From Ylistrum balloti (lineage: Eukaryota), in NCBI RefSeq assembly GCF_031769215.1, contig NW_026781986.1:496001-560000 (forward strand): a DNA stretch of 64,000 nt, read 5' to 3'. Numbering within the stretch: position 1 is the first letter of the stretch; every line of letters begins with the position of its first letter. A program made the translations under genes and the position numbers. A model generated the notes under the pieces. It was given only the letters and a program-made list of their open reading frames with translations, did not search any database and was not told where the DNA came from. This document shows positions 16,831 to 38,300 of the stretch, piece by piece.

Positions 16831-17144
16831 CCAAGTTATGAGGTTGAGTCTCATTTGTAGTCTGATGGTCTTGCAATATCTTTGCCATCCAACTGTGCTC
16901 GTGTCCTGTACCAACAATTCAGACTCCAATTGGTGGTTAAGCTTTTCACCAACAGTCTAGCTTTTGATCAGCAGTCCAGCCTTGCACTGGTGGTAAAACA
17001 TTCCATCAGCAATCAACCTTTTTCTCAATGGTCAAGTTTTACATCAGTGGACAACCTGAACATCAATAGTCAGCTTCAGGAAAGGTTAAAGTTCAAGTTC
17101 TATGTAACCTTACAATGGATCTCTGGATGCTATCCCATCATTCC

Positions 17145-20100
17145 TCAGTGTAAAAGACGATTGTACTCTGCCATCAACTGAGATTTTTTAACAGCATCCC
17201 ATGTCCTGGCAGCATAGTGAAACCTGGAAACACATGACATTTTGTCATGAATCAGCATTTTAGAATATTTTTAAACAATAATCTCTCATTTTAACTGAGA
17301 TATTTAGCATTTTTTATGATTCTTTTTTTGTACATGTATATGCCAGATCTTTACAGAAATATTTATCTTTTAATAAAATCTATCTTAATTTATAAAAGAT
17401 TTAAAAGCATGCTTAAAAGATTTAAAGTCTAATCATTTATAAAACGAAATGTTGAAATCAATATTTTTCAAAAACTTTTGCATGTTCAAGTAGTATATGA
17501 CAGAAGTATTTTTACAGCTTTGATGAAATCTTGAGCACTTTTGATCCCAAAAAATTCCAAATTTGTCAGAAATTAGAAATAATTTCTTTAATAATGTAGC
17601 TATGAAGATAATTAATATTAGACTTGAAAGGAATCGCCATGAAGATTTAAAGATTTTGTACTGGATTGAAAAAGCCAATGAAAAAAAACAAATACGTTAC
17701 AGCATTTTCATGTCATCAAGAAATGGCTTACTGCAGGATAAATATTTCATCATGATGTAAAGTTGTATAACATAACTTTTGTCTACTGATAACATAACAA
17801 TAATCTAACCATTTTCCAATGTATAATCAATATCTTTGGCAATAAAATATGTATTCTGATTTGCCTCCATCACCTCCTAGGTTTCAAAATTTCGGCCTTT
17901 GACATCACTGACAAGAAGAAACCTTCAGTTTGTTTTATTTCCTACTTTTCTCTACTGTACCTAGTTCTAAATTTGTATTGAAAAGTGCTTTTCACTTGAG
18001 TGTCTTTTTTTGTAAAATCATCCTATTGGTTTTTACTCTGCTCAAGTTGATAATATACATACCAGTTTTTTTCCGAGAGTGTCGTGTGGGTAAGCTGTTC
18101 TCGTGGTAAAGCATAGATCTGCTGGCGAAGTCCATTGATGAGTGTAGTAAAGCTTGGATAACCTCTATACTCAGGCAACAGGGTCAGGATGGCTTCTACA
18201 GTGAAAGTAAATTCACAAATACATTATTATAACAAATGAAATAAATTATGAAACTGAGACTTTTTTAAAAATAAAAACCAAAATTCTGGAAGAGTTATTT
18301 AGATTTTACAAATAAATGTCTAACAAACTATTAAAGGCACAAATATCAATTTTTTCTATGGCATATCAAAAACTAGTAAATCTATTTCATTTAATAAATA
18401 AGATTGTAATAATTAAGGTAAGGTGGATACATTTCATATTTCATCTTATTGCCCAATATTTATACATGAACTGTACCATCAGTTACTCCTTGATCCTGAA
18501 AAGACCTCGTGACCTTGGTTGACTTTGTAATAGAAAACACTACTTTACCCTGATTTGATTTCCCAGCTGAGTCAATACAAGGAAGAGGATACAGATTGAT
18601 ATCTGACTTCACAGTTCTCCGGTTAAGACCTGGTAGCATTTTCCCATCAGCCACAGTCACTGAACCTAAAGATTCAAACATAATAGGACTACTTTTGACA
18701 AATTCAAAATAATTCACGACAGATACGTTACATTTTATCAATAAGGGTGGCAGTAAAATCTTTCTTGTAAAGTTGTATTTATAAATGATGAATTAATATT
18801 CCTCTGTTGCTTAGGACCAGATTTGCTTTAATAAACTTGAAAACTATTTTCATTTTGTATAATGGTGATACCAAAACTTACCAGAATATTTTGTCAGGAG
18901 CATATTAATGGATGAGGGTCACTTATAGGAGCATGGACGCTTACTGGGTCAAATACTCCAGTTACATAATTTCTCATTGGGAATACTGAACTCTTTAATT
19001 CTTGTATGTGGCACAGAGACATAAGTAAAAGTGACAATGTGTTTTTCAATGAGATTAGCAGCAAATGAATATAAACAGTACAACCCACTACGAGATATTG
19101 GCGAGAGAACCAAGAAGGAGCTTCGAGCCCACCCTCATATAATCTCTATTAGTTCTTAATCAGTTGGATCATATCTCTTCCATGTACATCCAGGAACAAA
19201 GTAGAAATTACATCAAGTACTTCTCAACAGCAATAAACTATATCTGTCAAAATCCAAGATGGTCACCTTCAAGCTAAAACACCTTAACTAATGAGGCCTA
19301 CTATGGACCAATGTGTATTTGTCTTATATTCATAATTTCAGAATCATCCATCCTGTACTTGCTAAGAAATAGTGATAAGACAATATATCTCTCAAAATCC
19401 AGTATTTCTGATCGACCTTCAAGGAACAAATTGGAATTTATCACTTTAGATTTGAAAATGATTTCCTTTCGAACTTAGAACTTCAAGAAATAGTGATAAC
19501 AACTATTATTTATGGACTGATTGGTGGTGCAGGAAGGAAGGGCAATTTGAACAGAGGTTGATAAAATATACCCAAATAAGAAGTCTTTTATGTATATGCA
19601 AATTAACAGAAGGTATACTGATATATCTATGGATTTTCTGTTTAAATAGAAACCTTTAAAACTGATCAATAGAGTCTACAGATTTCTGCATAGAGAAAAA
19701 AAAAAACTGATATGAAATGCTTGGAAATTTTTCAGTATTTGCTAGATCACCTCTATATTTCAGCTTGGAAGTTTCAAAGACTTTCATCAGTGTCTGCTGC
19801 ATAGAGTTGAATGTTTCTACACTGAAGTGATCCCACACTGCCTTGTTCTGTATAAACACTGAAAATAAAGTACACATATATCTGGTGAATCTAGTGACAT
19901 TATTGTACAGGTAAAGAAACCATTTCCCACTTTGGACTCATATCTAGTATAAAATTCTTTCATGGTGGAAGAGGAGCATGTGGTCCAATGGACCTGCATC
20001 GATCACCTTTTATGTATTCGAATTTTAAAAAAATAATTTACATCATCGACATTCAAAGTCTGGATAAATGAATAGAAGAAATTGACTGCCATGACCTTCA

Positions 20101-23100
20101 GTATGAGTCAAGGCTATTTCTTTTTTTAAATCTTTATCAGGCTTCATTCAAGAAACTACATATGCACCAGCAGAATAATAGGATTTGATACTTTGACCTA
20201 CTATATGTCTAAAGGTAATTTCTTTTCACAAAATCTGTTTGGTTTTATCCAAGGAACATTTCTGCAAAACATCATGATTCTAGCCTTTTGGACATTGAAA
20301 AGATGTCATTTGAAGCTTTTTACAATTTACCCATGACCTTAACTGAATAAGGGTCAATGCCATTTTTTTCCATAAACATTGTTAAGCTTCATACTGGGAG
20401 CTTTCCAGTCAAATTTCCTATATAAAACTTTTGAATATTGAGAAAAGTCATCTTAAAGTTTAATATATTTTATTCCATTGACCTTGAATATGGGTCAAGG
20501 TCATTTAATTTTACAAAAATTTTTCAGGCTTGATATCAGGAACTTTCCACTCAAATATCATATATTATGATTCTAGCATATATGAAACTTGAAAAGAAGA
20601 TGTCTGAAGGATGATCAAACTCAACCACTGTAAAACTCAGATTAGGACCACAGTCATTTCTTTTCACAAACATTGTTGGGCTTCATAAAGGGAACTTTCA
20701 AGTCAGATATCATATCATGATTCAAGGGATTTTGAATATTAAGAAGAAGTAAATTGTCTGAAGGTTTTAACAAATTTTACCTCTGTGAACTTGAATATGA
20801 ATCATTTCACAAATGTTGTCAGGCATTAGCCAAGGAACCTAATATCCAAATATCACAATACATATGGTTATTGAGAAGAAGATGTTTGAAGGGAAAAAAT
20901 TACACTCAATTGCTGATAGCCGATGGATGCCATACTCCAGGTATTCTTAAATCTACATGTGTATACCAATTGGCTAAAGGGAACTTCTTTTCTTTCACTT
21001 GATCAGTTGACATAAGACAAGTATAAGCCAGAGGTCCAATGTTCGAATCCTAGTCGATGCATTGACATACTGGGTAAATAATGCTTTATAGTCACATTAT
21101 AAATTAAAAATTAACAGATGATAGATTCTTCAAGTTAACATAACTAGTGACAAGTCAATTTAGCGATTATGTCGATGTAAGCTTATAATGAGCATCAAAA
21201 AGCAGGTACAACATAGATCATGTTGGAGGATTGATATCTCTTTGCAATTGATCAGACCAAACATCCCTTTTTTTCTTCTAATGAATATGCTTATACTGCA
21301 GATACCTAAATGAAGTGTTTTGGAATTATTGAAGGACAATGTTCAAACACATTAGCTGTTTGTAACTCTACAGAACCGTTACAGATATGGCTTGGAGGGC
21401 TTATTACAAGGCATAATGCTGTAAAAGGATATGTTACAAAGTTAATATTGATGTAACATGTTGTTTTTTTTCACCATTCTACATGTCTGCGATAACAAAA
21501 CTATGACATACATCAACTACACAAACATGCCCTACTAATGTCCTTAGCGGTTTAAAAGTATACCTTTTGTCTGGTTCCTTGGAAATCCTTAAGGCAATAA
21601 ATATGTTCAAATCAAAATCTGCTATGTGTAGTAGGTTATTGAAAATGTATCCTGTTGAAGAATGGGAATTTAACTCATTTTTGCATTTGGAAAATATATC
21701 ACAGTTTTATTTGATACGTTCAAATTACACTGACTAATATCCATGCTTCAAAGCAAATCCTATTAATTTAAATCCTATTTCAATCTATTTTTATTTTATT
21801 TCTAATTTATTTCACTATATGGCACAAACTTCATGGTAAACATCAATGCTTTTGACTATTTTTAATACAATATTTTTTTCATGTCTAAATATAAAATATC
21901 AAAAAGTATTGAATATTTTATATTTTCCTGACTTTACCGGTTGGAACCTTCTGAAAAGCTTCGCCTAAGTGGTTAAATAATGGATGATTGCAGTGTAAAT
22001 GATAGGATTGACATTTTGTGGTGCGCTTCCTAAAGTGTGAGTAACGTCCCCTTGCCTAATTATAATCTGACGTCATTTTTTCCAGTCGCCATATTTCCTC
22101 CGCTGGTCCGTTACCCGAGGTAAAAATACCACGTGTTTTGTATTTTTTTCTTCAAGAACGAATATTGTGTGACATCTAGGTAATATCACATGTTATAAAT
22201 TCGTGTTTTAACTCCATTACTTTCTGGTTGTACCGCGTGTCAGCATTCCCTTTGTGTAAAATATCGGGACGCCGGTTCGTCGACAATGATGAATTGAATG
22301 CAATGCATGTGAATTATTTCCAATTCTGTGCTGATATTATCACATTATAGTATTTCGGAATGCTGTACTCGATTATTTAGAACTAGAAGTATAAGCACAC
22401 TCTGCATTAATTTGTTTTAAGACTATTCTCAATAACGCGAAGGAGGGGGAGGGGTTGTTTCATACGATTTCTTTATATAAAATAAATGAGGAATGCATTG
22501 ACATGCAGTAAGTTATGTCCAAACCATTACAGTGGGAATAGGTTTGATAAGGATCGGGATTTGGGATTAAAAGTTAAAGCAAAAATATATGTTTGGTCAA
22601 GAGGTAAAAAAAAAGCACACGGCCGGTGTCTTAAAATATATGCTGTATTTTGGTGTCGGTGAAGAAAGACAAAAGTTGCTAGCCTCTGATGAGCCATTTT
22701 TGTCTTTCTGTCCCCAGCCAAAATACCGCTTACATTTTCAGACACTGACTATGTATTCTATTTATCCTGCAACATTGATGAAAACTCTTTTTGTTGTTCA
22801 ATCTGTGGAAACCTGATGTTGACATTACACTGAATTTTGCCTGATGATGAACACCAAAAGAATTGCTCTGCACAGAAAGTGATCTTATAAATGTTCATTA
22901 ACTTGTTCATTACAACATATTAAAATGCTTATTCCAACAATGTATATTTCTAATCATAATTTTATTCTTTCAAATTTCCGCCCATGCTAAAATACAGCTG
23001 TTTTTTTGTCACTGCCGAATACAGCTAAATTATATGTGGCAGTTGTTTTCTAACAATGGCAGTACCAGTTGCAGGATAAATCTTGTTAGAAAGTAGGCTA

Positions 23101-26100
23101 CCATTTTGTTATATCTGATAATTTTCTCAATTGTAATTCATTTGTTGTCTCTTTTCATTTTCCTCAGCCTGAGCGAAAGGATTGGTTTTAATTTTTTTTA
23201 CATATTTTTTTTTCTCCTCGCTGCTCACAATGATGAACTTGGTGTCCAGTCAAGACCAACATGTCGGAAAACCAGACCAATTTGATTATCAACTACCTGC
23301 CCCAAACCCTGACTGATGCCGAATTCCACTCTATGTTTGCCTCCATTGGTAATATAAAATCATGCAAGATTGTCCGTGACAAGGCTACTAACTACAGCTA
23401 TGGTTTTGGTTTTGTCGATTACCAGTCGCCCGAGGATGCTCAGCGTGCCATACAGTCCCTGAATGGCCTTCAGCTCCAAAATAAATACATCAAGGTAGCA
23501 TTAGCAAGACCCGGAGGTGACAGCATCAAGGGAGCTAACTTGTATGTCAGGAACATTCCACGAGATTTTACTGCCGGGGATCTTGAGAGTATTTTCAAAT
23601 GTTATGGTGAAATTATCCAATGTCGTGTTCTAACTGATCAAGATACTGGCAATTCTAAAGGTGTAGGTTTCATACTGTTTAGTCAAAAAGCTTCAGCAGA
23701 TACAGCATTAGCAGAAAAAAATGGTGTTCCACTTCGTGAGGGGGACTTGCCTTTAATGATCAAATATGCAGAGGACAATGCTCAGAAAGTTCGCCCACCA
23801 GTTCAACCAATGTATCCAGCTGGCCCAAGGGGCTTCCCAGGTGGCCCAATGCGCAACATGCAAAATCGTTCGCGTTACAATCCAATGACTGGAGGTGGCT
23901 ACGGAAGTCCAGGTAATGGAATGGAGCCTCATGAAGGATATGTTCTATTTGCGTATAACATAGGGCCGGAGACCAACGAAAAGAATCTATGGGCTCTTTT
24001 CTCGCGCTATGGTGTCGTACAGAAAGTAAATGTTATCTATGACCACCAAAAGGGACTGACAAAAAACTATGGTTTTGTCACCATGGCAAACTATAATGCA
24101 GCTCAGATGGCTGTTAACTGTTTAAATGGCTACAAGTATTACAAGGGGAAGCCACTTTCTGTTTCTTTCAAAAATTGATTCTTAAATCACTTTTTTTTTA
24201 CTTTTATTTTTTTTAATAATGTCTTCATTATTCCATCACATGATCCACATGCAATCCAGCAAATTACATCTCGCATCAGAGTGCTTATGCCTGGGATCTT
24301 TTTTTTCTCTCTCTGTTTTTTTTTTTTTTTCCTTTATTATTTGTCACATAAAATATATACATTAATGTAATGCAGTGACAAAGCCAGTGTGGTACATGTT
24401 AAAGTGTATTTACTTGATGCAACATTGTGAACTCGGTAAAATGTTTCATTCAAAAATGGGTCTAAACAAGGTCAAGAGGTAGAATTGTCTGCTCTTGCTG
24501 CTTTTGTTGCTTGGTGTTAAATGAAAAATTGTTACTAGATCAAGTACTATTTTAAGTTTCAATCATCATTTTGTTTAAAACATTTCTACAATGCGTTATG
24601 TTCATGATGTGTCAAAAGTGATTTTGATGAATAAATTTTAACCTCAAAATCTTTTCGATAATAATGGATTAGATTTTTTTTTTCTGGTTTTTTTGGTTTT
24701 ATACATTACATGTTTAAAAATAAGCAGGACAGGTATTTCAGGTACTAATGTTTTTGAGTATGGCCAGTACCTATGCATTTAGCAAGCCTTTTTGGATCAT
24801 CAACATCACTTTTCTCTGCATTGCTTCCCTTAGTCAGGGATAACTGGTCTGACAATGTGGTGGAAATAGGTTTGACAATTGACTTATATCAAGGGTTTGA
24901 AATAAGAGTTGTCAAAATTAATCAGATAAAGGCCATTCATGCTGAGAAATTCACTTGCACGTATGAATGTATAGAAGACATTATGATAAGGAAAGCAGCA
25001 ATTAATATTTATAAGAAATCACCACTGGAAAGATGCTTCATCATAATTGTTCAAATGCCTGAGCATTTTCAGACGTCCTATGCTGGTCAACAGTTTAGCA
25101 ATTTCCCCAGACAATAGTTGAAATCCTTAAATTATTATTGCACATGATACTGTAAAGATATAATTGTATAGATCTACATATGTAATATGAAAACAAGGAC
25201 AACAGGTTAACATGATTTTTGTTAAAAACATTGTAGATCTTTTCAATGCAGGAATATAGAAAATTGTAAATGGTGGACCACTGACAATAAAAGTGCTATT
25301 GAGTGATATGTACTGTAGATCATCTGTTTATCAGAACACTGAATAATTATGTGATGCTACAATGACCTTTAGGACAGCATAATCATGCGATGCTACAATG
25401 ACCTTTAGGACAGCATAATCATGTGATGCTATGAAAGACTTTATGACAACATAATCATATGATACTATGAATGACCTTTAGGTGTCTGAATCATGTGATG
25501 CTATAAATGACCCTTTAGGATAGCCTAATCATGTGATGCTATAAATGACCTTTAGGATAGCCTAATCATGTGATGCTATAAATGACCTTTAGGATAGCCT
25601 AATCATGTGATGCTATATATGACCTTTAGGTGTCCGAATCATGTGATGCTATAAATGACCTTTAGGATAGCCTAATCATGTGATGCTGTAAATGACCTTT
25701 AGGATACACAGCATTTCCTCAAGTCTTAGTGGAGCATGGGTAAAGGTATAAAACTGATTATAAGTACAACATTTGCAAATTATTCAACTATTCTTCACTT
25801 CCCACAAAAAAAAAAGTTCTCATAAAATAAACATTGGAATCAGCATTAAAGTGTAGTACATCCATGAGTTTAGAGTGATCTTTCCTACAGGTGGAGCTAT
25901 CAGGTTACATACTACAGCAGTACTGCTGCGTTCCCCTCAAGTAGCGATGTTTTTGTTGATCAAAGTTCTACATGGAAGGACATTTTTCATTAATGAAGTG
26001 TGGCCAGATGTATTCATTTGCATAGGGCAAAAGGTTAGGAGGTCATATTAAGGACCATCACATCATCTACAATGTGTTGTTTCATAGACATCTATTATCA

Positions 26101-29100
26101 TTGCCATCTGTCTTGTTTTCAAACAAAGATGATAAAAATATACATTTTTTGCATTGCGTACAACAGTATTGGACTGTTTTTTATATATGGCACTTATAAC
26201 GTCTAAATACTTTATATAACAAATAACTAAGTAAAATGTTACAGTGTAAAGATTGAGCAAGCACTCTGAACTTACTAAATTTTTTACACTGCTTTTATTT
26301 GACAAGTTTCTGATCAGTTGATCGAGAGACTTGAAAAATGATGAATCTGAAAGCTTGTGTTTGGATTTAAAATGGGCTTTCCAAAAAATCAGTAAATTCA
26401 GTCATGCTGTGAATAACAAAGACTATCTCATTGTTTGGTCTTGTGATAGTCAGATGATCACCTTTTGTCAGATTTAGCAACAAAATATACCATGAGAAGT
26501 CAAAAAAACTTTTGTAAGATATAAAAACTTACATCCTTTTAAATTGTAATACAGGCTAGGACATCAGTATTTTCATATTTATATTTGTTATCAATGTAAT
26601 GTGTATTTACATTATTTTCAAATTGTTTACAGCAAGGACAGTTTGATTGTATATGCTACAAACCTCTTACAGGAGCAAACACAGATACTTGTATTTCTGT
26701 TTATGGGAGCCATTTATAGGACTAGAACTTCCAATGAGAATATTTTTGTAGGCTTAATACAAGCAATAATTTAGAATTAAATAATCAAGATTTTCAAGTT
26801 TACGAAAATTAAACTTTCAATTTTTTTTACATAACATGTTAGAATCATTTTGTATTCAAAACCGTCTTTTTTCATTTTGTTGGTTTTTTTTGGGGTTTTC
26901 TTTCCTTTTTTTTCCTTTTTGTTTTTTGTCAAGCTTTTTGGGAAAAAAACTTTACTATTTTAAGACATTTGTTTTCTGTCAATATCTGAATTACAAGATA
27001 ATCCCAAGTTTCTTTCCACCATTAAAAAAATCTTTGTCCAAATCATATTCTGAATACATGTGTTGTCTTTTATCAATGTTTCATTTTTATGCTATTCCAC
27101 TGCAACCAATAGGTCAAACTTTTATCTTTAATTTTCTCACTAGTAAATTGCCAATCACACCAGTTCACTATATAAAAGTTGCGTGCTTGTAATTTACAGT
27201 TAGAGACAGTTTAAGATAACATTGTATGTTGAAGATTGTAACACTGTACATATACTGTGAATGTGAATACTGTAATGCTAGTAGTAGTATGCTGGTCAGA
27301 TCCTGCCAGCCCCAGACAGGGAATGCTGAACACAACCTGTCAGCTTCTGAGAGTGATGCTGGTAACATATCTTGCCAGCTTCAGACAGCGATAATAAGAA
27401 AATGTTTGTTGTTGACTTTGTATTTCTTGTAGAAGTTGAAGAATGTTAATAAAAATGATACAGAAAATCAAATGTGGTCTTTTTAGTTATTAAGTTAATT
27501 TTGTTAGTAAAAAGAAGAAACTTTTTGGTCAGTTGAAAGTCTTACAAGGTGATTTTGTGTCATGTTGATGACATTATATAGTTTTGTAATGCAAGACTGG
27601 CGTGAACTGCGGACCTTAGATTAACTAATATCCACTGTAGATCCACAGTGATTATACACAAATTGTGTAGTTTCAGCCCCAGGCACCTGGAAGTTTTATG
27701 TATGACCTTGAATTTTCATATAATCATGGATAATACCACTCCCTGGACATGCCTCATTTCCTAACCATATCTTATAAAAGCAAAGGGTCATTTCACAAAT
27801 AGATATGTTTAATGACCAGGTTACAATGGCAACCAAAATCTCTTCCTCCCCACCCCTCCCCCCAAAAAAACAACAAAAGAACAATCCAAAACAAACCTGC
27901 ATGTTCATATGGCCCATGATATTTCTGATAGTTTCAATGAGATTGGTTCCCATGTTGAAGTAGAACTGTGGACAAGATCCTTCTAACACATCATTGCAAC
28001 CAAATGGCATCAAATGTCACATGGTTTGGAAAACTGTGCCATTGTAATTACCATTCTTCATATCTTTTTCTAGCATAACTGGACAGTACAGAAATTTCAA
28101 CCAATCAGATGCCTCCATTAAGTTTCCATAGTAATTGTTTTGGAACTCCTTAGGTGTCAAATTAAAGGTTTTTATAAAGGTGTCAAAGTATAGGTTTCAA
28201 TAAGTTTTACTATTTGACAATTTTTTTAATTAAAATTCATTTAAAGACATGGGCTGTGGGATCATTTCATAAAATCCTGTTTCTGTTAACATAATAGCCA
28301 AAATTCATGCTGAAAAATCCACCTGCATAATACATGTGTTCACACATGGTTCCTAACATTCCTGTGTAGTTGCATTCACTAGTTCTTGAGTTCAGGAACT
28401 GTCTTTACGATTTTTTACAGACAGACATATGGACAAGCTGTGTGTTATGTGAGGGGATTGGCTCTACTTTGTGATTCTTGTCATCTATATCCTACTGCCT
28501 AGTTATTCTCATTCAATTGAAATCATCTTTTGATTCATTATTTCCTGACAATTTTTTACCAGTTAGGAAATAAACACTAATATTGACATCAGAGTCATGC
28601 ACTTACTTTTTAAATTTTAATCTTTGTGGTTAATAATGTCACAACACATTATTAACCAGTAAAAACATTTTGAAATCCAAAAGACTTTTCTCTTGGTTCA
28701 CTTCACCTACTTTAATACTTTGGATTTTCTTGTGATGACACTGAACTCATGCCATCAATTCTAGACATTGAAACCAATTGCAAGACTGATAGATAGTTCA
28801 ACTTTCTAAAAGAGCTACATACCATTTGGGATCAGACTGGATTCAAAGGGAGTTGCTCTAAGATTGAACCAGGTCCTACAAGCAGCTATCCTAAAAGATC
28901 TTGTCTGGTCCAAAAAAAAACTACTCTGAAATCCTGCCTGGTTCTAGGTTTTGAAGTTTTATCTATCATGATCTCTTTCTAGACTGGTTCTTAAAATGCT
29001 ACCATGAGATCAGGACTGGCTGATATTACCGTTATGCAACACTTTATGCTTCTAATAGTATTACTCAGTAGTTTAGAAATAATCACTCTATACAATCCTT

Positions 29101-32100
29101 ACCTAAGTTTGGAAAATAATCTGATGAGTCTTCACTGGGGTTGTCGTGGTTACTGGATGGTGATGATGGCTTCAGCATCTCTGCAGTCAGCAGAAATCTG
29201 TTGATTTATTACATGTAAGATATTAGAACATGCGGAATTCAGAAGAAAACCCCAAAAGTGCTCTTTGAAAAAAAAATTGTTGAAAAAATTACCTCTTTTC
29301 AAAGACTACCAAGGTGTGTGCCAGTTGCTGTATAGTTATGTAAATGATTTGGATGAAAAGATTATGATTAATTGATACAATCATGTCACGATCAAGTTTT
29401 CTATGGGTAAAACATTACCATCTTTGTTCATAATAGCTGCTATTCACATGTTTGTTTGGATTTTGCAATGCTGTGATGATCCCTTGTTTGATTCTTTTTC
29501 CCCGGACTTTTGGTTATCAATTATGTAATGCCCTCTGTGATATCCCAATCCCTCAGTCCTGACTTTTAGTTGGAGATATTGTGTTGCCACACTGTAATAT
29601 CCCCCACCCCTCAGGCCTGAATTTGAGTTAGACACAACCTGATGCCCCTCTGTAATATCCCAAACCTATTTCCCTGACTTTGAGTTGGAGATAATGTGTT
29701 GCCCCTCTGTAACATTCCAAACCCTAACTTCAAGTTGGATGTAATGTGTTGCCTCTCTGTAATATCCCAAAATCTTACTTTGAGTTGGAGATTATGTGTT
29801 GCCCCTCTGTAATATCCCTACCCATCACTTTGAGTTTGAGATTATGTGTTACCCCTCTGTAATATCCCAAAATCTGACTTTGAGTTGGAGATTATATATT
29901 TCCCCCTTCCTGGGCTTATTATAAAAATAAATATAAAGTTAAATATGTTTTGTTACCTAAGGAAGCTTGTATCAGTAAACCAATCCTGCACCACCAGAAC
30001 AACATGACACACATTCATCAAGAAGGCAGCTTGCTGCAAGGACTAAAACAAAATTGGAGATCTGATTAATGTCAGGAAAATATTTAAAACAAGATAATCA
30101 ACATCTGATTGTGTAGACTTCAGTTCTTGTTACAAAATCAAACTGCCATCAGAGAGGAGCTTAGATTCATTTGCAGGGTTTGTGCTTGGTATTAACAAAT
30201 GACCCCTTTTTGGATAAAATGGGGTCCTTTTATATTTTTTGAATGGATGTCTTCTAGATAAGTGTCTACAATCCTTTTCAACTTCAATAGGCTATAGGAA
30301 CAGCTTCACCACAAACTCTAAATCTTGGATTTTGGACAAGCACGCGTTGGAATTTTCCTATTTATTTCTACTGGTTCATTTCAGCAATGCAATCTCGAAA
30401 TGATAAAGAGAGGAATGAATTTTCTAAATGGAAAAAACTTCTAATATCTTTTTCAAAAATTCAGTTACAAATCGTATCAGAGGAAATTGCATTGCACATC
30501 ACCTACCTGTATTTCAATGCAGTTTTCTGCTGTACTGTACTCAGAACCAATTTTCTTATCGTGGCGGATCATCCGGTCCAATACCGATGAACTCATCACA
30601 GGCTGTCAAAAAAAAATTAAATAATGTTCAGGTTTTACTTTCAAAGCTGCATAAACACACCTGTATTAATCATGCACAGACTGTCAAACATTCAGTCTAT
30701 ATTCACAGGTCCTCAGCATAGCCCACCAGTCAATATTCAAAGACCCTCAACACAGCCCATCAAATTTTTAAATATATGGTCATTATTCAACTGCCCTCTG
30801 CTCAATACAGCTCATCAATATTAAATGATATAATAAAATTATTTATAATATGCATAAAAAATATTTTGTCAAAAATCTTTGGCTATCAATATGGTCAATC
30901 AAAATGTCAAAAATGTGGTTGTAAATTCTCTCATCACAGGGTTACACAAAACTTTATCAATACTAATGCTATCGCCACATGACAGACACTTGAAACGTAT
31001 TTCAAAATGTCAGACAAACCTGTGTATCAAGAAAGATGACTCGTTCACCAGACACAAACATGTCTACTCCACTGGTCTGGTGCTCACACAGTTCAATGGT
31101 GTCATGGGTCTGGGGTGGAAACAGGAACTGTCTACAAAAGTGTTTTTTTCTTTTTATGTTTTTGAATTTTAAATCAACAATAAAAGTTTCTGTGAACATG
31201 CCATATAGAAAAGAATGCTGAGTTTGAGGGCAATGACACACTCATAAATCTTGTCAAAAGTCACCAGATATTGTACAATTTGAGGATACACATAAGCAGA
31301 TACCTATCATAGATTCATAGATTTAGTAAGCATATGGCAGGATAACTCTTAATAGAGATTCGCATATTGGACAAGCATGTTTTAGAATTAACGTTTCTTG
31401 GAAATATATTGTCTTCTATGAGAATAAACAGAATTTGGATCAAACTTTGATAGATTTGTCCCCAAGAGTTGTTCATCATCAGTGTTTTAACTTACCTGTG
31501 ATTGTCTTCAGGAGAGTTACCGGCCAGCAGCGACAGAGCTGTAGACTTCCCACTGCCTTGAGGTCCAATAACCCCAACCACCAGGAAATCTGTCTGGTCC
31601 ACCAACATCTACAACGGATAAACGTACAATGGAATCTTCTTCTCTGGATAAAACGGAGACATGTACCCCCAGAAATAAAAGTATCAAAATCTGCTTTTCA
31701 AAGTCCTTAACGACATAGATACTGGAAATATTGTCCAGTCTCTTATCACTCTGTGAATCCTGGAAAAAGATCCGGATGCAAACATGCTTATTCTATCTCA
31801 GATTCAGGTGATGGGCTTATTACAGGACCATTAAATAGCAATTCCTTGTAATTTTACTGAATAGTAGTAGATTTGGATTGTATTACCAAGCATCAATTTT
31901 TTTGCTGGATAGATTCTGTATTGATTCAGCATTCATCAACAGGGAACATCTTACCGCACATTGTATCTATCTGGCAAAGATTCCATATCTGATAAAAAAT
32001 TCACTGATATCTACAGCTGTTCAGTAGCATATAGAAAAATACAGTTTCCAAACGGAATATAAAATCATGGGTTGTTCACCTGACTCTAAGTATGGGGTAA

Positions 32101-34393
32101 TATGTTACTTCATTGTGCTTATAGCCAGAAGTCTCACCTCCATTGCCGACTCTTGCCACATCTGAGATTCATCCACCAGTTTTGTACATCTAGTCATCTC
32201 TGGAGGCGGAGCCAGACGGTTCTGACTTGAACCTGTTAAGGGGAAATAACTTCCATACATGGTATTTCACAAGAACACAATTTCCTAGGTCCTTCAGGAT
32301 ATGAATGAAAAGAAGAGTGACATACATTCTAATACATCATACAATTTCCTTAGTTTTAAATGAATATATGAAATAATATCTTTTCAAGCTGCAGACCAAG
32401 ATTGATGAAATACTTCAATATTTTATACAAACGGAACAAGGATTGAAAAATTCACAATCAGAATCCCCCTCTCCCTCTTGAGTAATTTCATTTTTATCCA
32501 AATTATAAGAAAAATGACCACCCTTTCCTTATGATGATCTAGAAACTTAATTACCCCAACATAAAAAAAAAGTTATGGCAGTCCATAAACAGGTCAGCAA
32601 TATCAAAATTTTAAATTTTGATTTAAGTCTGTTTGTTTGTATACAGTGTTTGTAAACACTTTTGTATCCCTTCATATGTTCACTGCATTAAAATTTGAAT
32701 AAAGTGCCTAGCTACTTACTTTCAGATGAAAAGTGTTGGTTACGCTGCACAGTGTGAGTGGGCTGAGGAGGTGGGGTTTCACCTGAGGTCAAAGATGCTG
32801 GAATGCTAGTCAAGTTTCCAGTCGGAGCTGATGGGACATCATCACGATTTCTCAACATCACCATCTTCTCTGGAGTTTTACTTCCGAGTGCCGAGGGTGT
32901 GGCAGGTCCACTGACGCTTGGAGTCACTCCAGCTGTTGTGGAAGTGCTGCCCTTTTATAAAAATAATTCTCGTCATCAAACAAAATCTGCAACTCATTTT
33001 ATGATATAAAATGTAAATATTTTATATATGCTGTATTCAGTTTCCATATTAGGACCATAAACTTGTGCCATGCTCATAAAATTGTATAGAGTGGTAAAAA
33101 TTCTAGATCACTTTGGCCATGGAAACCAATATATGAAATCTTTTCCTTTAAATGTAAGTCAGAACCATGTTGCAACTAAAGTGTATCATAATCAATATGA
33201 TACCAAATTATACCTGTTCTTGAGATGGTTTGGCCAGGATGATGGGGCGTGGCTTCTCAGAAGTTTCATTTCCATACTCCTCCTAAGCCAAATAATGAAA
33301 CAAATGTTGTGATTAAACTTATAAACTTTATTTCTTTTACAACAATTGCAAAAAAAAGTTTTGTCAACTTATACTAGTCACTCTTGTTGGCCCGTTTGTA
33401 AGCGCGCGAGGGGTCTTACTTTGGGAGGAAACTGGAGTACCCGGGGAAAACCTACGTGGTCGGGCAGGTGACCCCTTACCTTTTCACGTCCTTCCAGGAA
33501 TCGAACCCCGGTCAGCTAGGTGAAAGGCGAGTGCGTTACCACTGCACCACCCGACCACCAAAATGTTGTGTTTAGGCCTAGTGTCTTTCAAAATCCAGAA
33601 ATAATAACTAAGTTACTTCAATCAGTTATTGTTCTAATTTGTCATTGACTTTTAATTACTTTTTCAGTGGTGTCACCCTTAAGCTTGAATTGTTTTGAAG
33701 AACAACTAAACAGTTGCTGGTATGAACATTTTTCCTCAGCCTTGGGGTAACCATACACCAATTTCTGAGTGCACAAGATTGCCATAAATGGTCAATAATG
33801 CATCTACATGTATATGCAACAGGACAGGTAAAAAAATAATCACGTTGAGTGCCTCAGCAGGAATTAAACGCAGGTCGTAATACACTGTAATTATATGTAC
33901 CTGTAAAAACTGAGTAAGGGGCAAGAATAACAATTTTATCACTATGAGTAAGTGACATTGGCTCACTCCTTTTACGTGTACAAGCCTTAACTGTATTTAA
34001 TGAAGTCAAATCAATTCATATAACTTTAGGTTTTTGTTACCCACTTCAGTTTTCTTTTTGTATTGTTCTTTTAATTATGAAGAATTAAGCCTTTTAATGT
34101 GTCTGAAATTGGGGGCTAAGATATGAAGTCTCGCTCCTTCATAGAAAACAATGGCAAGTATGTGACGATTTAGTGACTGTGGGAAAGCAATATCACGGAA
34201 AGTACGCAACAAGCTCTAAACCGATACTGAGAATCGAATCAAGGACTACAAAACCGGTGTCTGTGATTTTAAACACCGTTTGATCCACTTGACTGAAAAC
34301 AACCTTCCGTTGTCTTTCGGGTCCACCTCCTCTACCTCCCCTGCGTGGCCTCCGCCGCATCCCCCGACCATCCCTGTCGCTTTGAGAAGACAT
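17145..34393 (-). CDS. SMG9: Nonsense-mediated mRNA decay factor SMG9 (13 coding exons, about 474 aa)
   Basis: Exons 34393-34304, 33282-33214, 32951-32720, 32232-32138, 31608-31496, 31131-31020, 30602-30507, 30042-29957, 29197-29103, 19858-19751, 18665-18549, 18195-18063 and 17223-17145 are phase-consistent. P-loop LVVGVIGPQGSGKST, FLDTQP, AAFLMNVCHVVLVVQDWFTD and C-terminal LTHTTLSEKNWFHYAARTWDAVKKS..AEYNRLL all match SMG9. The exon-1 donor (AAG|GTTGTT) is weak and least certain. Confidence 0.96.
22061..22119 (+). promoter_or_regulatory. Putative promoter and non-coding first exon of the ELAV-family gene
   Basis: TATAAT (22061), CRE palindrome TGACGTCA (22068-22075), Inr-like CCAGTC and YY1-like CGCCATATTT, then donor GAG|GTAAAA (22119/22120). 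Matching acceptor CTTTTCATTTTCCTCAG at 23167. Confidence 0.55.
23261..24178 (+). CDS. elav: ELAV/Hu-Sxl family RNA-binding protein, three RRMs, intronless CDS, nested antisense in an SMG9 intron
   Basis: RRM1 TNLIINYLPQ..YSYGFGFVDY; linker ARPGGDSIKGANLYVRN; RRM2 KGVGFILF; hinge RYNPM; RRM3 LFAYNIG..LWALF..YGFVTM..SVSFKN. The exact paralogue (for example lophotrochozoan Elav2) cannot be fixed without a tree. Confidence 0.93.
   Translation: MSENQTNLIINYLPQTLTDAEFHSMFASIGNIKSCKIVRDKATNYSYGFGFVDYQSPEDAQRAIQSLNGLQLQNKYIKVALARPGGDSIKGANLYVRNIPRDFTAGDLESIFKCYGEIIQCRVLTDQDTGNSKGVGFILFSQKASADTALAEKNGVPLREGDLPLMIKYAEDNAQKVRPPVQPMYPAGPRGFPGGPMRNMQNRSRYNPMTGGGYGSPGNGMEPHEGYVLFAYNIGPETNEKNLWALFSRYGVVQKVNVIYDHQKGLTKNYGFVTMANYNAAQMAVNCLNGYKYYKGKPLSVSFKN
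25344..25706. repeat. 36-38-bp minisatellite, about 10 units
   Basis: Unit AATCATGTGATGCTATAAATGACCTTTAGGATAGCCT. Confidence 0.92.
29505..29898. repeat. ~50-bp minisatellite, about 7 units, in an SMG9 intron
   Basis: Unit TGCCCCTCTGTAATATCCCAAAATCTGACTTTGAGTTGGAGATTATGTGT. Confidence 0.88.
33365..33559 (-). mobile_element. tRNA-derived SINE with V-domain-like core, in SMG9 intron 1
   Basis: Head GGTCGGGTGGTGCAGTGGTAACGCACTCGCCTTTCACCTAGCTGACCGGGGTTCGATTCC carries A and B boxes and a Glu-like TTC anticodon loop. It is followed by GGTTTTCCCCGGGTACTCCAGTTTCCTCCCA, resembling the V-SINE central domain. There is no tRNA acceptor stem. Confidence 0.75.
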
Positions 34394-35378: not shown

Positions 35379-38300
35379 ATGAGAATCAATGTACAGAATG
35401 TTAGTCACCAGGAGGTCGTGTCACTGCACCTGCCTCTTATCATTGGAGAGATTGAGTCGGCAACACCTCTCAGTCAGGCTCATGTGGAAGTTTGGAATGC
35501 TTCATGGCCCCAGTATACAAAATTGCAGTGGCCAGTTATAGACAGAACATTCAAAGCTCTTGTTAGACTGGGAATTGGAGAAAATGTCATACATTTGAAA
35601 TTTGAAAATGAATTATCAACGATACATCTCATCCGCGAGATGCCACATTTTGTCCATTTTGTCCGTCCAGTGTACATTGTATGTTCAGACAACGATGGCT
35701 ATTTTCAGGCCCCAGCAGATGAGGACTGTTCTCCAAACAGTGCTCAGGAAAGAATTAAACTGGCAGCCATGTTGATTCAGACATTCACAGCAGAAAAGAT
35801 GAGAGAACATGGGTTTGGGAGACAGAACTTTCAGTTGGAACTGGATGAGTGTGGGGAACCTATCTGTCACATTTTTCAGAGTAAACTAACGTTAGAGGAA
35901 GCTCACAGTAAAACAGGAAATGAACTGTGGACGTACTTTGCAAAAGAACTTGTGACCTCAGACTTGAGTAAGAAAGAAACATGCAAATGGTTTTGTTTTA
36001 TGTCTTTCACAAGGTATTTTCCACCAGAAGGCAAAATGCCAAAAACTCACGGCGAGGTTTTGAGCAATACACGTGGCCATACAGCATTAGGTAAGCTGAA
36101 AGGGATTTTATATAGATTTTGTTGCAGTAAGCTCATTATACAGTTCTAAACAAGACAAGATCTTTTTTGGTTATAAATGAAAAAAGCTGAACATATAAAG
36201 GAAAATAACAGATCTATGAAAATAGTAAAATACAGATTGTTTTCTTTTGGGTGATAGAAATATTGACATGTCATTCTTACCTTTAAAAAATTACTGATAA
36301 AGAAGATTAACTTTTTTCAAGTCCAGTTTGAAATGCGGCATAGATTTATATTAGAATTTGTAGAATTGAATATTTGATGTTTCTGTCTGTTGTGCTACTT
36401 CACCTTGGTTAGGGATTGAAAATATACATATAGTGAAAAAAATGTACAGGCCTGTTTATTTGTTATTATTTGTTTTATCTGTGCACATTTATATGTATGT
36501 TGTATACAAATATATACATTTCAATTGTCTTACTCATTCATTCTTTTTAGGAGGTGGTGGTCTTGCCCTTTTTGGAACAGGTAATCTCCACACCTGGGCT
36601 CCCTCGTTAGATCAGATGTATGCCTACTTCACAAACAACAAGAAGATTGATCGTAGGGAACTCATGGATGACAGTGCTTACAGGTAAAAAGGTTACAGGT
36701 GTATGAGTGTAGGAACAATCAGTTGATCATATAAATAGTTGATGGATTCTATAGGCAAGTTGTTTGAACAGGTAAAAGCATGTATAGAATTTTTGATGCA
36801 ACTGCTACACGTTATTTTGCAGTCTGTGAAGTTTTTTAGTTAAATTGTGGAGGTAAGACATTCTTTTGCAATTTTGAACCCTGATGATTAATTCAGCATA
36901 CAGCTGGTATCTCCTTAAAAAGTAATTTGTTACTTTGACTCATGTGGTCATATTTTCTTTTCCTATTTCTTCTAAAATTTAGTTTCTGATGAGAACAGCT
37001 ATGCAATGCCAATGTATTCTGATCTGTATTTGCTACATGTGCACATTTTGTCAGATTAGACAGATTTTTAAGCTCTGTGAAGGTGGAGTATATAGTCAGC
37101 GCTTTGTCCATCTGTCATAATTTTGTCGAGAGCATAACACAACAACTATTAGAGGTATCAACATGAAACTTCATAGGAAGATAGAACTCAACAAGGAGAA
37201 GTGCAGTGCACAAGAACCATTACTCTCTTTTGCATAATTTGGTTCTTATTGCCCTGTGCTATTTTTCATACTTAAATTTTGTCAGGAGCATTACACTAAA
37301 ACTATCACTCTCTTTTGCATAATTTAGGAGTTACTACCCTTTACTTTTTTCATACTAAAATTTTGTCCCATTCATGGATCATAGCCTTCTATGACAAACC
37401 TTGTTTTATAGAGATTTTGTATTGTCTGTAGAAGGGGATATGATAGCTCACTTGATAGAGCACTGGACTATACAACCACAGGTGAGGAAGCAGACATGAA
37501 TAAAAGTTTGATGGTCTTTTATGTATTTAAAGCTGAAATTACTGATGTATAGTTGTGTCTTTGGACAAGACACTATTGCTTTGGATGGTATACAATGGAC
37601 CTCCCCTATGTTGTTCATTGAGGTAATCACTAGTTCTTGAACATGACACTTTGCTGGATGTTTTAGTTGAATTTTCCCAGCTGTACAATGTTTTGGTTAC
37701 AAGTATTCCAGAACAAGGATTCAATTCATGCAGAACACACTGATAGGAGGTGAACCTACAGTGTCTTTAGCATGATAATCTACAGCTCTACCAACTTAGT
37801 GAAAGAATCATGTTCCATCAGCTAGGTGACAGAGACCATATTTATGATTTCTACAAGCCACACAGACCTGTTGCATTTACACTAGGATCTTAGAGGTAAT
37901 TTTGTGAGGAACAGTTGTTAAGTGGCTTGAAATATTTTGACTATTATCTTATTTCACTCATTTGTTCATTACAGAGAGTATTATTGGGCCAACTATGCAA
38001 CAGGGCTTGGCGCTTCTCTCCACGAACTTGGTCACACTTTTGACCTTGCACACACACCAACGGGTATAATGGCACGAGGATTTGATGACATCTATAAAGT
38101 CTTCACGATACGAAAATCAAGGAACCGGGACCGTAGCAAGACACGACACCACTACCGTAGTGGAAGTCGTGACAGCAACATATCCCGAACATCCTCCACA
38201 AGCAGTGTGGAGAGCGTGACAGGAAGTAGTAACCAATCAGCAGAAGAAAGTTCAGACCAAGGTCAAGGGTCAGGTCAGAGGTCAGGGAAAGATAAATCTT

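Follow-up and report, generated by a model that had tools for sequence, protein, structure and literature searches.

An ELAV-type gene whose coding sequence is free of introns lies antisense within an intron of SMG9 in the scallop Ylistrum balloti. The question raised by this locus is how the gene came to be there, and to which branch of the family it belongs. The reading that we favour, with a probability of about 0.8, is that it is a functional gene of the Elav2 branch, an extra paralogue of scallops, derived from an Elav2 that already had no introns in its coding sequence when it was duplicated or moved into SMG9. The nested gene is real and conserved among scallops; yet it is an annotated extra copy of an old intron-free lineage, and mostly ordinary.

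The nested gene and its host

In a search of the whole genome, the Pfam Smg8_Smg9 model (PF10220) detected one gene only, on contig C1135, presumably SMG8, and it had no match in the window (the entire stretch of 64,000 nucleotides analysed). SMG9 was therefore identified exon by exon against PDB chains; its exons, like those of the canonical ELAV gene on contig C69, were searched singly and not as joined spliced models. Minus-strand SMG9 exons were found on both sides of the ELAV reading frame. Human and C. elegans SMG9 chains were matched by the translations of three exons: the P-loop exon (31495-31608) with E 3e-9, exon 29101-29205 with E 9e-5, and exon 18026-18223, in the C-terminal region of human SMG9, with E 4e-12. 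No SMG9 match was found among PDB chains for the translation of exon 19659-19859, which is assigned to SMG9 on its position, reading frame and conservation.

The 12 SMG9 exons of the original prediction are matched by as many conserved islands or pieces of the size of an exon. The four 3' exons, at ~17114-17227 (stop near 17148), 18061-18230, 18537-18682 and 19749-19858, are conserved islands in comparison with Pecten and Mizuhopecten. The eight 5' exons are contained in 29103..34393. They lie at 29103-29202, 29951-30108, 30498-30611, 31014-31139, 31493-31623, 32132-32251 and 32714-32954, the eighth being the first coding exon, whose end is the ATG at 34393, and they were placed from conserved islands, pieces of open reading frame and the PDB matches of 31495-31608 and 29101-29205. 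Between the two groups lies the host intron (19859..29102, minus strand), a GT-AG intron whose splice sites could be read directly: on the donor side the exon ends in ...AACTTAG at 29103 and GTAAGG follows, and on the acceptor side ...TTTTCAG ends at 19859 (AG at 19860-19859), the next exon starting from 19858. At 9.2 kb, compared with approximately 0.3-1.2 kb for the remaining introns, it is the largest of SMG9, with the exact ends that had been proposed, and it contains the entire nested gene. An Rfam scan of this intron, at E values up to 0.1, gave no match.

The predicted 918-nt uninterrupted coding sequence on the opposite strand was confirmed at 23261..24178 (plus strand, stop included). 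It encodes a protein of 305 aa, in which Pfam RRM_1 matches three stretches: RRM1 (~aa 8-78), RRM2 (~aa 94-166), separated from it by the linker ARPGGDSIK, and RRM3 (~aa 224-303), preceded by a short hinge with RYNPM at aa 205-209. The protein scored 299.7 bits on the ELAV/Hu family model TIGR01661 (ELAV_HUD_SF), above the cut-off of 279.1. HuC/HuD align with RRM1-2 over its full length. The nearest RRM3 domains are those of Drosophila ELAV and human HuR, and, as the original prediction had it, both RRM3 and the R[YF]NPM hinge are ELAV-like. Against four orthologues, dN/dS was 0.025-0.047 at dS 0.57-2.5: the nested coding sequence is under strong purifying selection.

Pecten maximus (L024) and Mizuhopecten (L036) carry the same gene in the homologous SMG9 intron and in the same orientation. 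Their proteins (XP_033747209-12, four RefSeq accessions that share one protein sequence, and OWF55994) are also 305 aa long, and are 97% and 94% identical, respectively, to that of Ylistrum. The Pecten gene is already annotated in RefSeq, as "ELAV-like protein 2". In all three species the coding sequence and both conserved elements that flank it lie within the intron, the ends of the transcript being putative. The nesting is absent in chiton, limpet and octopus, as it is for the scallop paralogue. That the two loci have been joined by an error of assembly, or that the gene is a dead retropseudogene, has a negligible probability, given that three independent assemblies agree, that the SMG9 exon and intron are covered from 19700 to ~22845 by DNA contigs of run X1, and that the reading frame is intact with a dN/dS of ~0.03. 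Both possibilities were rejected.

The putative transcript

The host intron appears to accommodate every part of the nested gene: a conserved promoter-like region of its own, a single coding exon, a long 3'UTR and, probably, an intron in the 5'UTR. The transcript would therefore not run across any exon of SMG9. A conserved island at 22015-22287, with 77-79% identity, spans the stretch proposed as the core promoter and the first, non-coding exon (22039..22119, plus strand). Within the latter segment, a perfect TGACGTCA at 22069-22076 is invariant in three scallop genera and is followed by a GCCGCCATATT-like motif kept in the same number of genera. The donor of the putative 5'UTR intron (CGAG/GT, 22119/22120) reads CGAG-GTAAAA invariantly in three scallop genera. 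The intron would extend over 22120..23167 (plus strand), from this conserved GT to a polypyrimidine-AG acceptor situated 93 nt upstream of the ATG, and the acceptor tract ...TCTCTTTTCATTTTCCTCAG is conserved in five scallop-type sequences. An interspersed repeat, marked by very high contig depth, occupies ~22500-23100. The promoter proposed near 22060 and the 5'UTR intron at 22120-23167 are thus suggested by conservation across species only. Counting against this gene model, the junction of exons 1 and 2 was not found in the contigs of relatives, and contigs from three of them run straight across the proposed acceptor. The intron may be retained, or the transcript may start elsewhere.

Downstream of the coding sequence, Tandem Repeats Finder reported a 37-bp minisatellite of ~10 copies (25344..25706) within the probable 3'UTR. 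Further on, a U/GU-rich element (27369..27484, plus strand) ending in AATAAA (27448-27453) shows 82-93% identity with its counterparts in Pecten and Mizuhopecten, which lie at an equivalent point of the intron. It probably serves the nested gene as a distal poly(A) site, in which case the 3'UTR would be ~3.3 kb long.

The only public run containing this Ylistrum stretch, X1, is DNA, and its contigs leave the coding sequence uncovered, which says nothing about expression either way. An orthologue of the nested gene is carried by contig L033 of run SRR19746226, which must be RNA, since comparison of another of its contigs, L020, with the Argopecten genome shows splicing. The orthologue is thus transcribed.

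Elav2 ancestry and the origin of the nested copy

The best named matches of the 305-aa protein were mollusc and annelid Elav2. Both full-length trees placed the nested gene inside the mollusc Elav2 assemblage, and in trees of RRM1-2 it stood apart from the canonical ELAV/Hu clade (support of the canonical clade, 97/95). Lophotrochozoan Elav2 proteins (Capitella CapI-elav2, Malacoceros Mfu-Elav2, sipunculan Elav2 and Aplysia ELAV 2-like; discussed in PMC7489019) are 55-59% identical to it, and share with it the three RRMs, the ARPGG linker, the R[FY]NPM hinge and the intron-free coding sequence. The nested gene differs from them by a shorter hinge (305 versus 358 aa for the protein), a long stem branch, and a location in SMG9 rather than in the vicinity of LAP1_C.

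An uninterrupted coding sequence was seen in all Elav2-type genes inspected here, although it is not a published criterion of the group. Gene span equals coding length in Argopecten, Liolophura (a chiton), Octopus (two copies), Paralvinella (an annelid) and Ornithodoros (a tick); in the limpet Lottia the gene is nearly uninterrupted, its span exceeding the coding sequence by 45 nt. In the Ylistrum genome itself, contig C307 carries another Elav2 without coding introns, identical to XP_060071201, whereas the canonical ELAV, on C69, is multi-exon and distant from the nested gene. The C307 copy lies 49 kb from the sole LAP1_C gene, a linkage and not an adjacency; in chiton and limpet, LAP1_C neighbours Elav2. 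The copy in SMG9 is therefore probably the relocated duplicate.

As to how it was relocated, the original prediction, an independent retroposition into SMG9, found no support in that form. A processed ELAV-family mRNA inserted into the SMG9 intron, in parallel to Drosophila elav in arginase, is possible but doubtful. The coding sequence is indeed free of introns, and the nested gene is far from its paralogue, on another contig. Their leaders also differ: the paralogue has a 7.9-kb 5'UTR intron (L020 versus L019) with its acceptor 64 nt before the ATG, as against 93 nt in the nested gene, and similarity between the leaders is not visible, all of which would be compatible with a retrocopy to which a new 5' exon was added afterwards. 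However, the main hallmark of a retrogene, an intron-free copy of an intron-bearing parent, is uninformative here, since neither the closest paralogue nor the Elav2 relatives have introns in their coding sequence. Their absence from the nested gene is thus inherited and is no sign of fresh retroposition; by the same token, the mechanism of the move into SMG9 is unreadable from gene structure. Moreover, both copies appear to have the same layout, with a single coding exon separated by a 5'UTR intron from a non-coding exon upstream, and duplication at the DNA level would preserve it. Casual inspection revealed neither a poly(A) remnant nor target-site duplications, and such traces would be expected to have decayed at dS >0.6.

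The parallel with Drosophila had been correctly quoted: the coding sequence of elav is intron-free and lies on the opposite strand in intron 3 of arginase (Samson 2008, PMC2529313). In both cases a member of the family without coding introns sits antisense in an intron of an unrelated gene of housekeeping type. The scallop gene belongs to another branch, however, the dipteran elav being derived from the canonical fne/rbp9 type. The nesting in arginase is limited to Drosophila, whereas the intron-free state of the scallop gene is far older than its nesting.

On the reading that we prefer, an Elav2 with an intron-free coding sequence would have been duplicated or moved into the intron of SMG9 no later than the base of the scallops, and the nested copy would then have diverged fast before being held almost unchanged. 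The trees are consistent with such a course: the nested-gene clade has a stem branch of 0.58-0.73 and very short internal branches, which fits fast early divergence followed by constraint. An AU test marginally rejected a scallop-only duplication, in which the nested clade would be the sister group of the 358-aa scallop proteins (p = 0.031). Possibly the duplication goes further back, and copies were lost in other lineages; alternatively, the test may have been misled by the long branch.

By homology, the three-RRM protein most likely binds U-rich or AU-rich RNA and would regulate the processing, stability or translation of mRNAs. Published Elav2-type genes are not neuron-specific (PMC7489019), and one elav2-type gene is testis-specific (PMC2795745). 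The latter, Macrostomum melav2, is a spiralian three-RRM elav-like gene labelled Sxl by keyword or BLAST, as are the spiralian "Sxl-like" genes of bivalve gonad transcriptomes (PMC5608214). These genes suggest a function in the gonad more than in the nervous system, or at least may indicate the gonad as much as neurons. A second scallop Elav2, fast at first and then frozen, would be a candidate tissue-specific RNA regulator.

The layout itself might be regulatory, ELAV-type transcription interfering with SMG9 and so tuning nonsense-mediated decay. It has been kept in at least three scallop genera at dS ~0.6. We nevertheless consider this role very improbable: without overlap between exons, pairing of mature sense and antisense transcripts is impossible, the layout is absent from the chiton, limpet, octopus and scallop-paralogue loci described above, and nested pairs can persist merely because they are hard to separate. 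Intron-free nested genes are common, and this one is annotated in related scallops, so that the nesting alone carries little weight. The broader pattern is more useful: from chiton to tick, all the Elav2-type genes that were inspected have an uninterrupted coding sequence.

Relation to Sex-lethal

Membership of the Sex-lethal (Sxl) family was rejected. On the Sxl model, TIGR01659, the 305-aa protein scored 222.2 bits for a cut-off of 486.2, and it retains an ELAV-like RRM3 and the ELAV hinge, unlike Sxl with its two-RRM architecture. Sxl homologues confirmed outside the Diptera do not reach the cut-off either, scoring 255-346 bits, but they exceed their own score on the ELAV model; for the nested-gene protein the order is the opposite. 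The homology to Sxl (PDB 1B7F, 3SXL, 4QQB) lies in RRM1-2, at ~172 bits, and in the linker motif shared with the Drosophila protein. The predicted Sxl-like character of this region stood in so far as ARPGGDSIK is nearer to Drosophila Sxl than to Hu proteins, but it is common to the whole Elav2 lineage and not specific to this gene.

More generally, the Elav2-type lineage, nested gene included, could be the closest kin of pancrustacean Sxl, with Sxl as its two-RRM offshoot. We hold this tentatively and rate it as rather unlikely. In its favour, the linker segment (aa 60-120) gives 72 bits against Drosophila Sxl compared with 66 for HuR and 63 for HuD, and ARPGG[DE]SIK and YV.N[LI]PR are shared with the fly protein. 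In the RRM1-2 trees, confirmed Sxl homologues (from termite, bees, moths, crayfish and leafhoppers) grouped with Elav2-type and chelicerate proteins, away from canonical ELAV/Hu, with SH-aLRT 91 in a quick tree and UFBoot 96 / SH-aLRT 88 in a careful one. But this group includes an alveolate protein, from Vitrella, and support fell to 86/54 without it, a pattern suggestive of divergent sequences attracting one another. AU tests rejected neither a placement of Sxl with canonical ELAV (p = 0.12) nor one outside all three-RRM proteins (p = 0.19). The motifs also lose force, as non-dipteran Sxl has ARPSG and not ARPGG, and N-L-P is a general RRM state. Over the whole of RRM1-2, HuC/HuD (178 bits) at least equal Sxl (172), and canonical fish ELAV1, at 278 bits, exceeds the 305-aa protein on the Sxl model. 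Drosophila Sxl has introns in its coding sequence, which is hard to square with an intron-free ancestor.

Tick, horseshoe-crab and spider proteins group with the Elav2 type, and the one chelicerate gene structure inspected, that of the tick, is intron-free. Chelicerates thus carry this type, though the literature calls Elav2 lophotrochozoan-specific, and its intron-free state in molluscs, an annelid and a tick dates the intron loss near the protostome base. This pattern gives a concrete handle on where Sxl arose. The most far-reaching combination, an ancient retrogene-like ELAV branch that includes chelicerates, Sxl as its two-RRM offshoot and a neofunctionalised, possibly gonadal copy in SMG9, seems to us unlikely as a whole. 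Among ten of the initially unnamed representatives in the trees, identification yielded one alveolate and one acanthocephalan.

Nesting in SMG9

Within positions 19000-30000, the sole long open reading frame lies on the plus strand at 23261-24178 (918 nt with its stop) and encodes a 305-aa protein. The surrounding gene is on the minus strand, and its exons, searched one by one against PDB chains and never as a joined spliced protein, match SMG9, a nonsense-mediated decay factor. On human SMG9, the P-loop exon at 31495-31608 (-) aligns with residues 198-234 (E 5e-9; it also matches C. elegans smg-9), the exon at 29101-29205 (-) with residues 331-366, and the exon at 18026-18223 (-) with residues 453-498 (E 7.5e-12). 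The exon at 19659-19859 by itself had no PDB match, and the window went undetected by the Pfam Smg8_Smg9 model. SMG9 coding exons thus flank the ORF on both sides, and the original prediction of an uninterrupted, opposite-strand CDS of 918 nt inside the largest SMG9 intron is borne out. The predicted number of SMG9 exons, twelve, was recovered from ORF pieces and conserved islands. Likewise, the host intron has canonical ends exactly where it had been placed, at 19859-29102: read directly, the donor is G/GTAAGG, with GT at 29102-29101 (-), and the acceptor TTTTCAG/, with AG at 19860-19859 (-). It measures 9.2 kb, and the remaining SMG9 introns 0.3-1.2 kb. The intron beside the exon at 29103-29202 holds a tandem repeat array (29447-29952, -) of open pieces about 50 nt apart, with recurring 'GYYRGATH..LQLKVR' translations.

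The Pecten maximus orthologue (97% identical) sits within a minus-strand gene with a 476-aa product, and that of Mizuhopecten (94% identical) is likewise inside a minus-strand host gene. Blastn with window 13000-34000 recovered the SMG9 exons in order in both loci, with the ELAV-type gene in the same orientation between homologues of exons 19749-19864 and 29100-29202. Only one public run holds the stretch, and its DNA contigs cover 19700 to about 22845 in collinear order. Conservation of the nesting in other molluscs, the check originally proposed, therefore holds for Pecten and Mizuhopecten, and an assembly artefact was rejected on the basis of these two loci and the collinear contigs. Among the Elav2-type genes inspected in other species, none was nested in SMG9.

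Pairwise dN/dS among five orthologues was 0.025-0.047 (dS 0.57 to above 2), and the nested gene is under constraint. The Argopecten-like orthologue was assembled from eight runs, one being SRR19746226. This is an RNA run, since one of its own contigs (L020) proves spliced when compared with the Argopecten genome, and the orthologue is therefore transcribed there.

Conserved elements of the nested unit and neighbouring sequence

Besides the CDS, two islands of the intron are kept in all three genera, at 22015-22287 and 27369-27484 (both +). The first is promoter-like: an invariant GCCTAATTATAATCTGACGTCATT, which is a perfect CRE-like TGACGTCA, is followed by CCAG.CGCCATATT and then by GGTCCGTTA..CGAG/GTAAAAA, whose GT at 22120 is the 5'UTR intron donor of the original prediction. 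Just before the putative acceptor at 23167 stands TTGTCTCTTTTCATTTTCCTCAG, a tract that is nearly unchanged in Pecten, Mizuhopecten, an Argopecten-like species and one relative further removed. Some 46 nt further upstream the sequences can no longer be aligned, and contigs of three relatives continue through the putative acceptor into intron-like sequence. The second island, U/GU-rich and 82-93% identical, ends in AATAAA at 27448-27453, and can be read as a distal poly(A) site, with a predicted 3'UTR of about 3.3 kb. The putative promoter, 5'UTR intron and poly(A) site are all proposed from conservation only. With its ends so predicted, the nested unit overlaps no SMG9 exon.

A 37-bp minisatellite (25344-25706, about 10 copies, 87% match) lies within the probable 3'UTR. 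Interspersed repeats are found at 20300-20900, upstream of the promoter-like block, and at 22500-23100, inside the putative 5'UTR intron; summed contig depth there is about 1500 versus about 10 nearby, with many partial joints.

Just past the SMG9 3' end, a very long open exon (10142-13330, +) encodes 1062 aa; in the same place, the Pecten locus has a 1662-aa product with no Pfam match. Downstream of the SMG9 start, exons of another gene lie at 35379-36149 and 37937-38413 (+), and the HExxH-type motif in one of them (HELGHTFDLAH) points to a zinc metalloprotease-like product. At 60001-62000, composition jumps to a GC of 0.49, versus about 0.35 elsewhere, with a GC skew of -0.40.

The Elav2 lineage and the duplication

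The 305-aa protein has three RRM_1 domains (Pfam), and scores above the cut-off of the NCBIfam ELAV/HuD model (299.7 bits versus 279.1). RRM3 is nearest to that of Drosophila ELAV (71 bits), then to human HuR RRM3 (63-64 bits), and the hinge motif RYNPM has counterparts in every Elav2-type protein (RFSPM in fish ELAV1); both had rightly been called ELAV-like. Among named database proteins, the top matches (55-59% identity) are 'ELAV 2-like' of molluscs and Elav2 of annelids or sipunculans, chelicerate 'ELAV-like 1' proteins coming next. Elav2 has been described as a little-studied paralogue specific to lophotrochozoans, which in Capitella and Sepia is not restricted to neurons (PMC7489019). 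Clustered at 90% identity, the window protein falls together with 'ELAV-like protein 2' from Pecten maximus (XP_033747209-12) and Mizuhopecten yessoensis (OWF55994). The gene itself is already known in RefSeq; it is a scallop-level member of the Elav2 kind and of the known class of nested genes.

This genome has three ELAV-type loci: the nested gene, a multi-exon canonical ELAV (contig C69), and an uninterrupted ORF on contig C307 (366773-367834; 1471-2568 of locus L006). The latter is another Elav2-type gene lacking CDS introns, and its 358-aa product, starting MDEQ, is identical to Ylistrum balloti XP_060071201. In the canonical ELAV, the exon for aa 76-135 is present twice, adjacently (949991-950158 and 950285-950461), and the matched frame of one copy is interrupted by two TAG stops; this may be an alternative or a decayed duplicate exon.

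The span of the Elav2-type gene is the same as its CDS length in the chiton Liolophura (951 nt), in Argopecten (1077 nt), in both copies of Octopus bimaculoides (927 and 957 nt), in the annelid Paralvinella (1143 nt) and in the tick Ornithodoros (909 nt; L038 3001-3909); in Lottia span and CDS differ by 45 nt. The octopus genes form an inverted pair 6 kb apart (L026 10001-10927, +, and 16390-17346, -), and the second (318 aa) is highly divergent (branch length about 1), with ARPSG and SHLP replacing ARPGG and RNLP. From chiton to tick, the intron-free CDS therefore characterises the Elav2-type lineage as a whole; it predates molluscs and, judging by the tick, probably goes back to the protostome ancestor. 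Our literature search found no paper tying Elav2 to intron loss. Since relatives and the C307 copy share it, the intronless CDS cannot serve as evidence of fresh retroposition into SMG9, and that part of the original prediction loses its support. The precedent it invoked was correctly cited: the Drosophila elav CDS is intron-free, thought to be retro-derived, and transcribed antisense in arginase intron 3, a nesting found only in Drosophila (PMC2529313). The scallop gene likewise has an intron-free CDS antisense in a host intron, but its nesting is independent and in a different ELAV branch, and its intron-free state far predates the nesting.

In chiton and limpet, a LAP1_C gene is the upstream neighbour of the Elav2-type gene, and the 358-aa copy on C307 lies 49 kb from the sole LAP1_C match of this genome. 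The C307 gene is thus probably the positional orthologue of mollusc Elav2, and the SMG9 copy looks like a relocated duplicate. In the 358-type gene, a non-coding exon 1 is followed by a 7.9-kb 5'UTR intron and a single coding exon (L020 versus the Argopecten genome), which is the layout proposed for the nested copy; no leader similarity between the two types, which would decide between DNA duplication and retroposition, was seen. Both full-length trees recover the nested scallop clade with 100% support, on the longest internal branch (0.58-0.73) and with very short branches within; it falls inside mollusc Elav2, in an unresolved set of bivalve and gastropod lineages above cephalopods and the chiton. 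Constraining it as sister to the scallop 358-aa clade cost 12.5 log-likelihood units (AU p = 0.031), so that the duplication may be older than scallops, unless the test is misled by the fast stem. A search of 5.8 billion clusters contained no non-scallop sequence more than 63% identical, the nearest being cephalopod proteins.

Relation to Sex-lethal and function

Family membership in Sxl was rejected, the NCBIfam sex-lethal model giving 222.2 bits, far below its cut-off of 486.2. No protein of this genome is above that cut-off, the best matches being the two Elav2-type genes; on the same model, lophotrochozoan Elav2-type proteins reach 222-246 bits, two chelicerate proteins 226-265 and fish ELAV1 278. 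The predicted Sxl-like linker holds as a local likeness: residues 60-120 reach 72 bits with Drosophila Sxl, compared with 66 for HuR and 63 for HuD, with ARPGGDSIK.ANLYVRNIPR in the nested protein versus ARPGGESIKDTNLYVTNLPR in Sxl and ARPSS..I.DANLY.SGLP in Hu. However, several findings weaken the Sxl link, the higher fish ELAV1 score on the Sxl model among them. Mollusc Elav2 and chelicerate relatives share the motif, and RRM1-2 as a whole is as close to HuC/HuD (178 bits) as to Sxl (172). Non-dipteran Sxl carries ARPSG, and N-L-P, which an alveolate RRM protein has too, may be the general state.

Sxl was placed by exhaustive search with RRM1-2 and trees rooted on PABP-like domains; representatives were those for which the Sxl model beats the ELAV model by 50-108 bits, confirmed by source names (termite, bees, moths, crayfish, leafhoppers). 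Canonical ELAV/Hu formed a single clade (support 97/95), and Sxl grouped with Elav2-type, chelicerate and some further sequences (SH-aLRT 91 in the quick tree; UFBoot 96, SH-aLRT 88 in the careful tree). A Vitrella protein is also in this group, and without it support drops to 86/54. Sxl with canonical ELAV (AU p = 0.116) and Sxl outside all three-RRM proteins (p = 0.188) were not rejected. Given these values and the Vitrella effect, a tie of Sxl to the Elav2-type lineage is only a possibility, and long-branch attraction among the divergent sequences is a real alternative. Chelicerate 'ELAV-like 1' proteins (P0024, P0045, P0105) group with the Elav2-type and not with canonical ELAV, and the tick gene is intron-free, whereas the literature holds Elav2 to be lophotrochozoan-specific. 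A gene type uniformly intron-free, present in chelicerates and maybe tied to Sxl may merit separate study.

By homology, the nested protein should bind U-rich or AU-rich RNA via RRM1-2. Transcriptional interference with SMG9 would be possible in principle, though improbable. The neuronal transcription originally assumed is unsupported, since published relatives give mixed hints: flatworm melav2, first caught by the keyword 'sxl', is testis-specific and required for spermatid differentiation (PMC2795745), and blood-clam gonads show male-biased expression of a 'Sxl-like' transcript (PMC5608214). A squid member of the first octopus gene's cluster is deposited under 'sex lethal' (UZQ18773).
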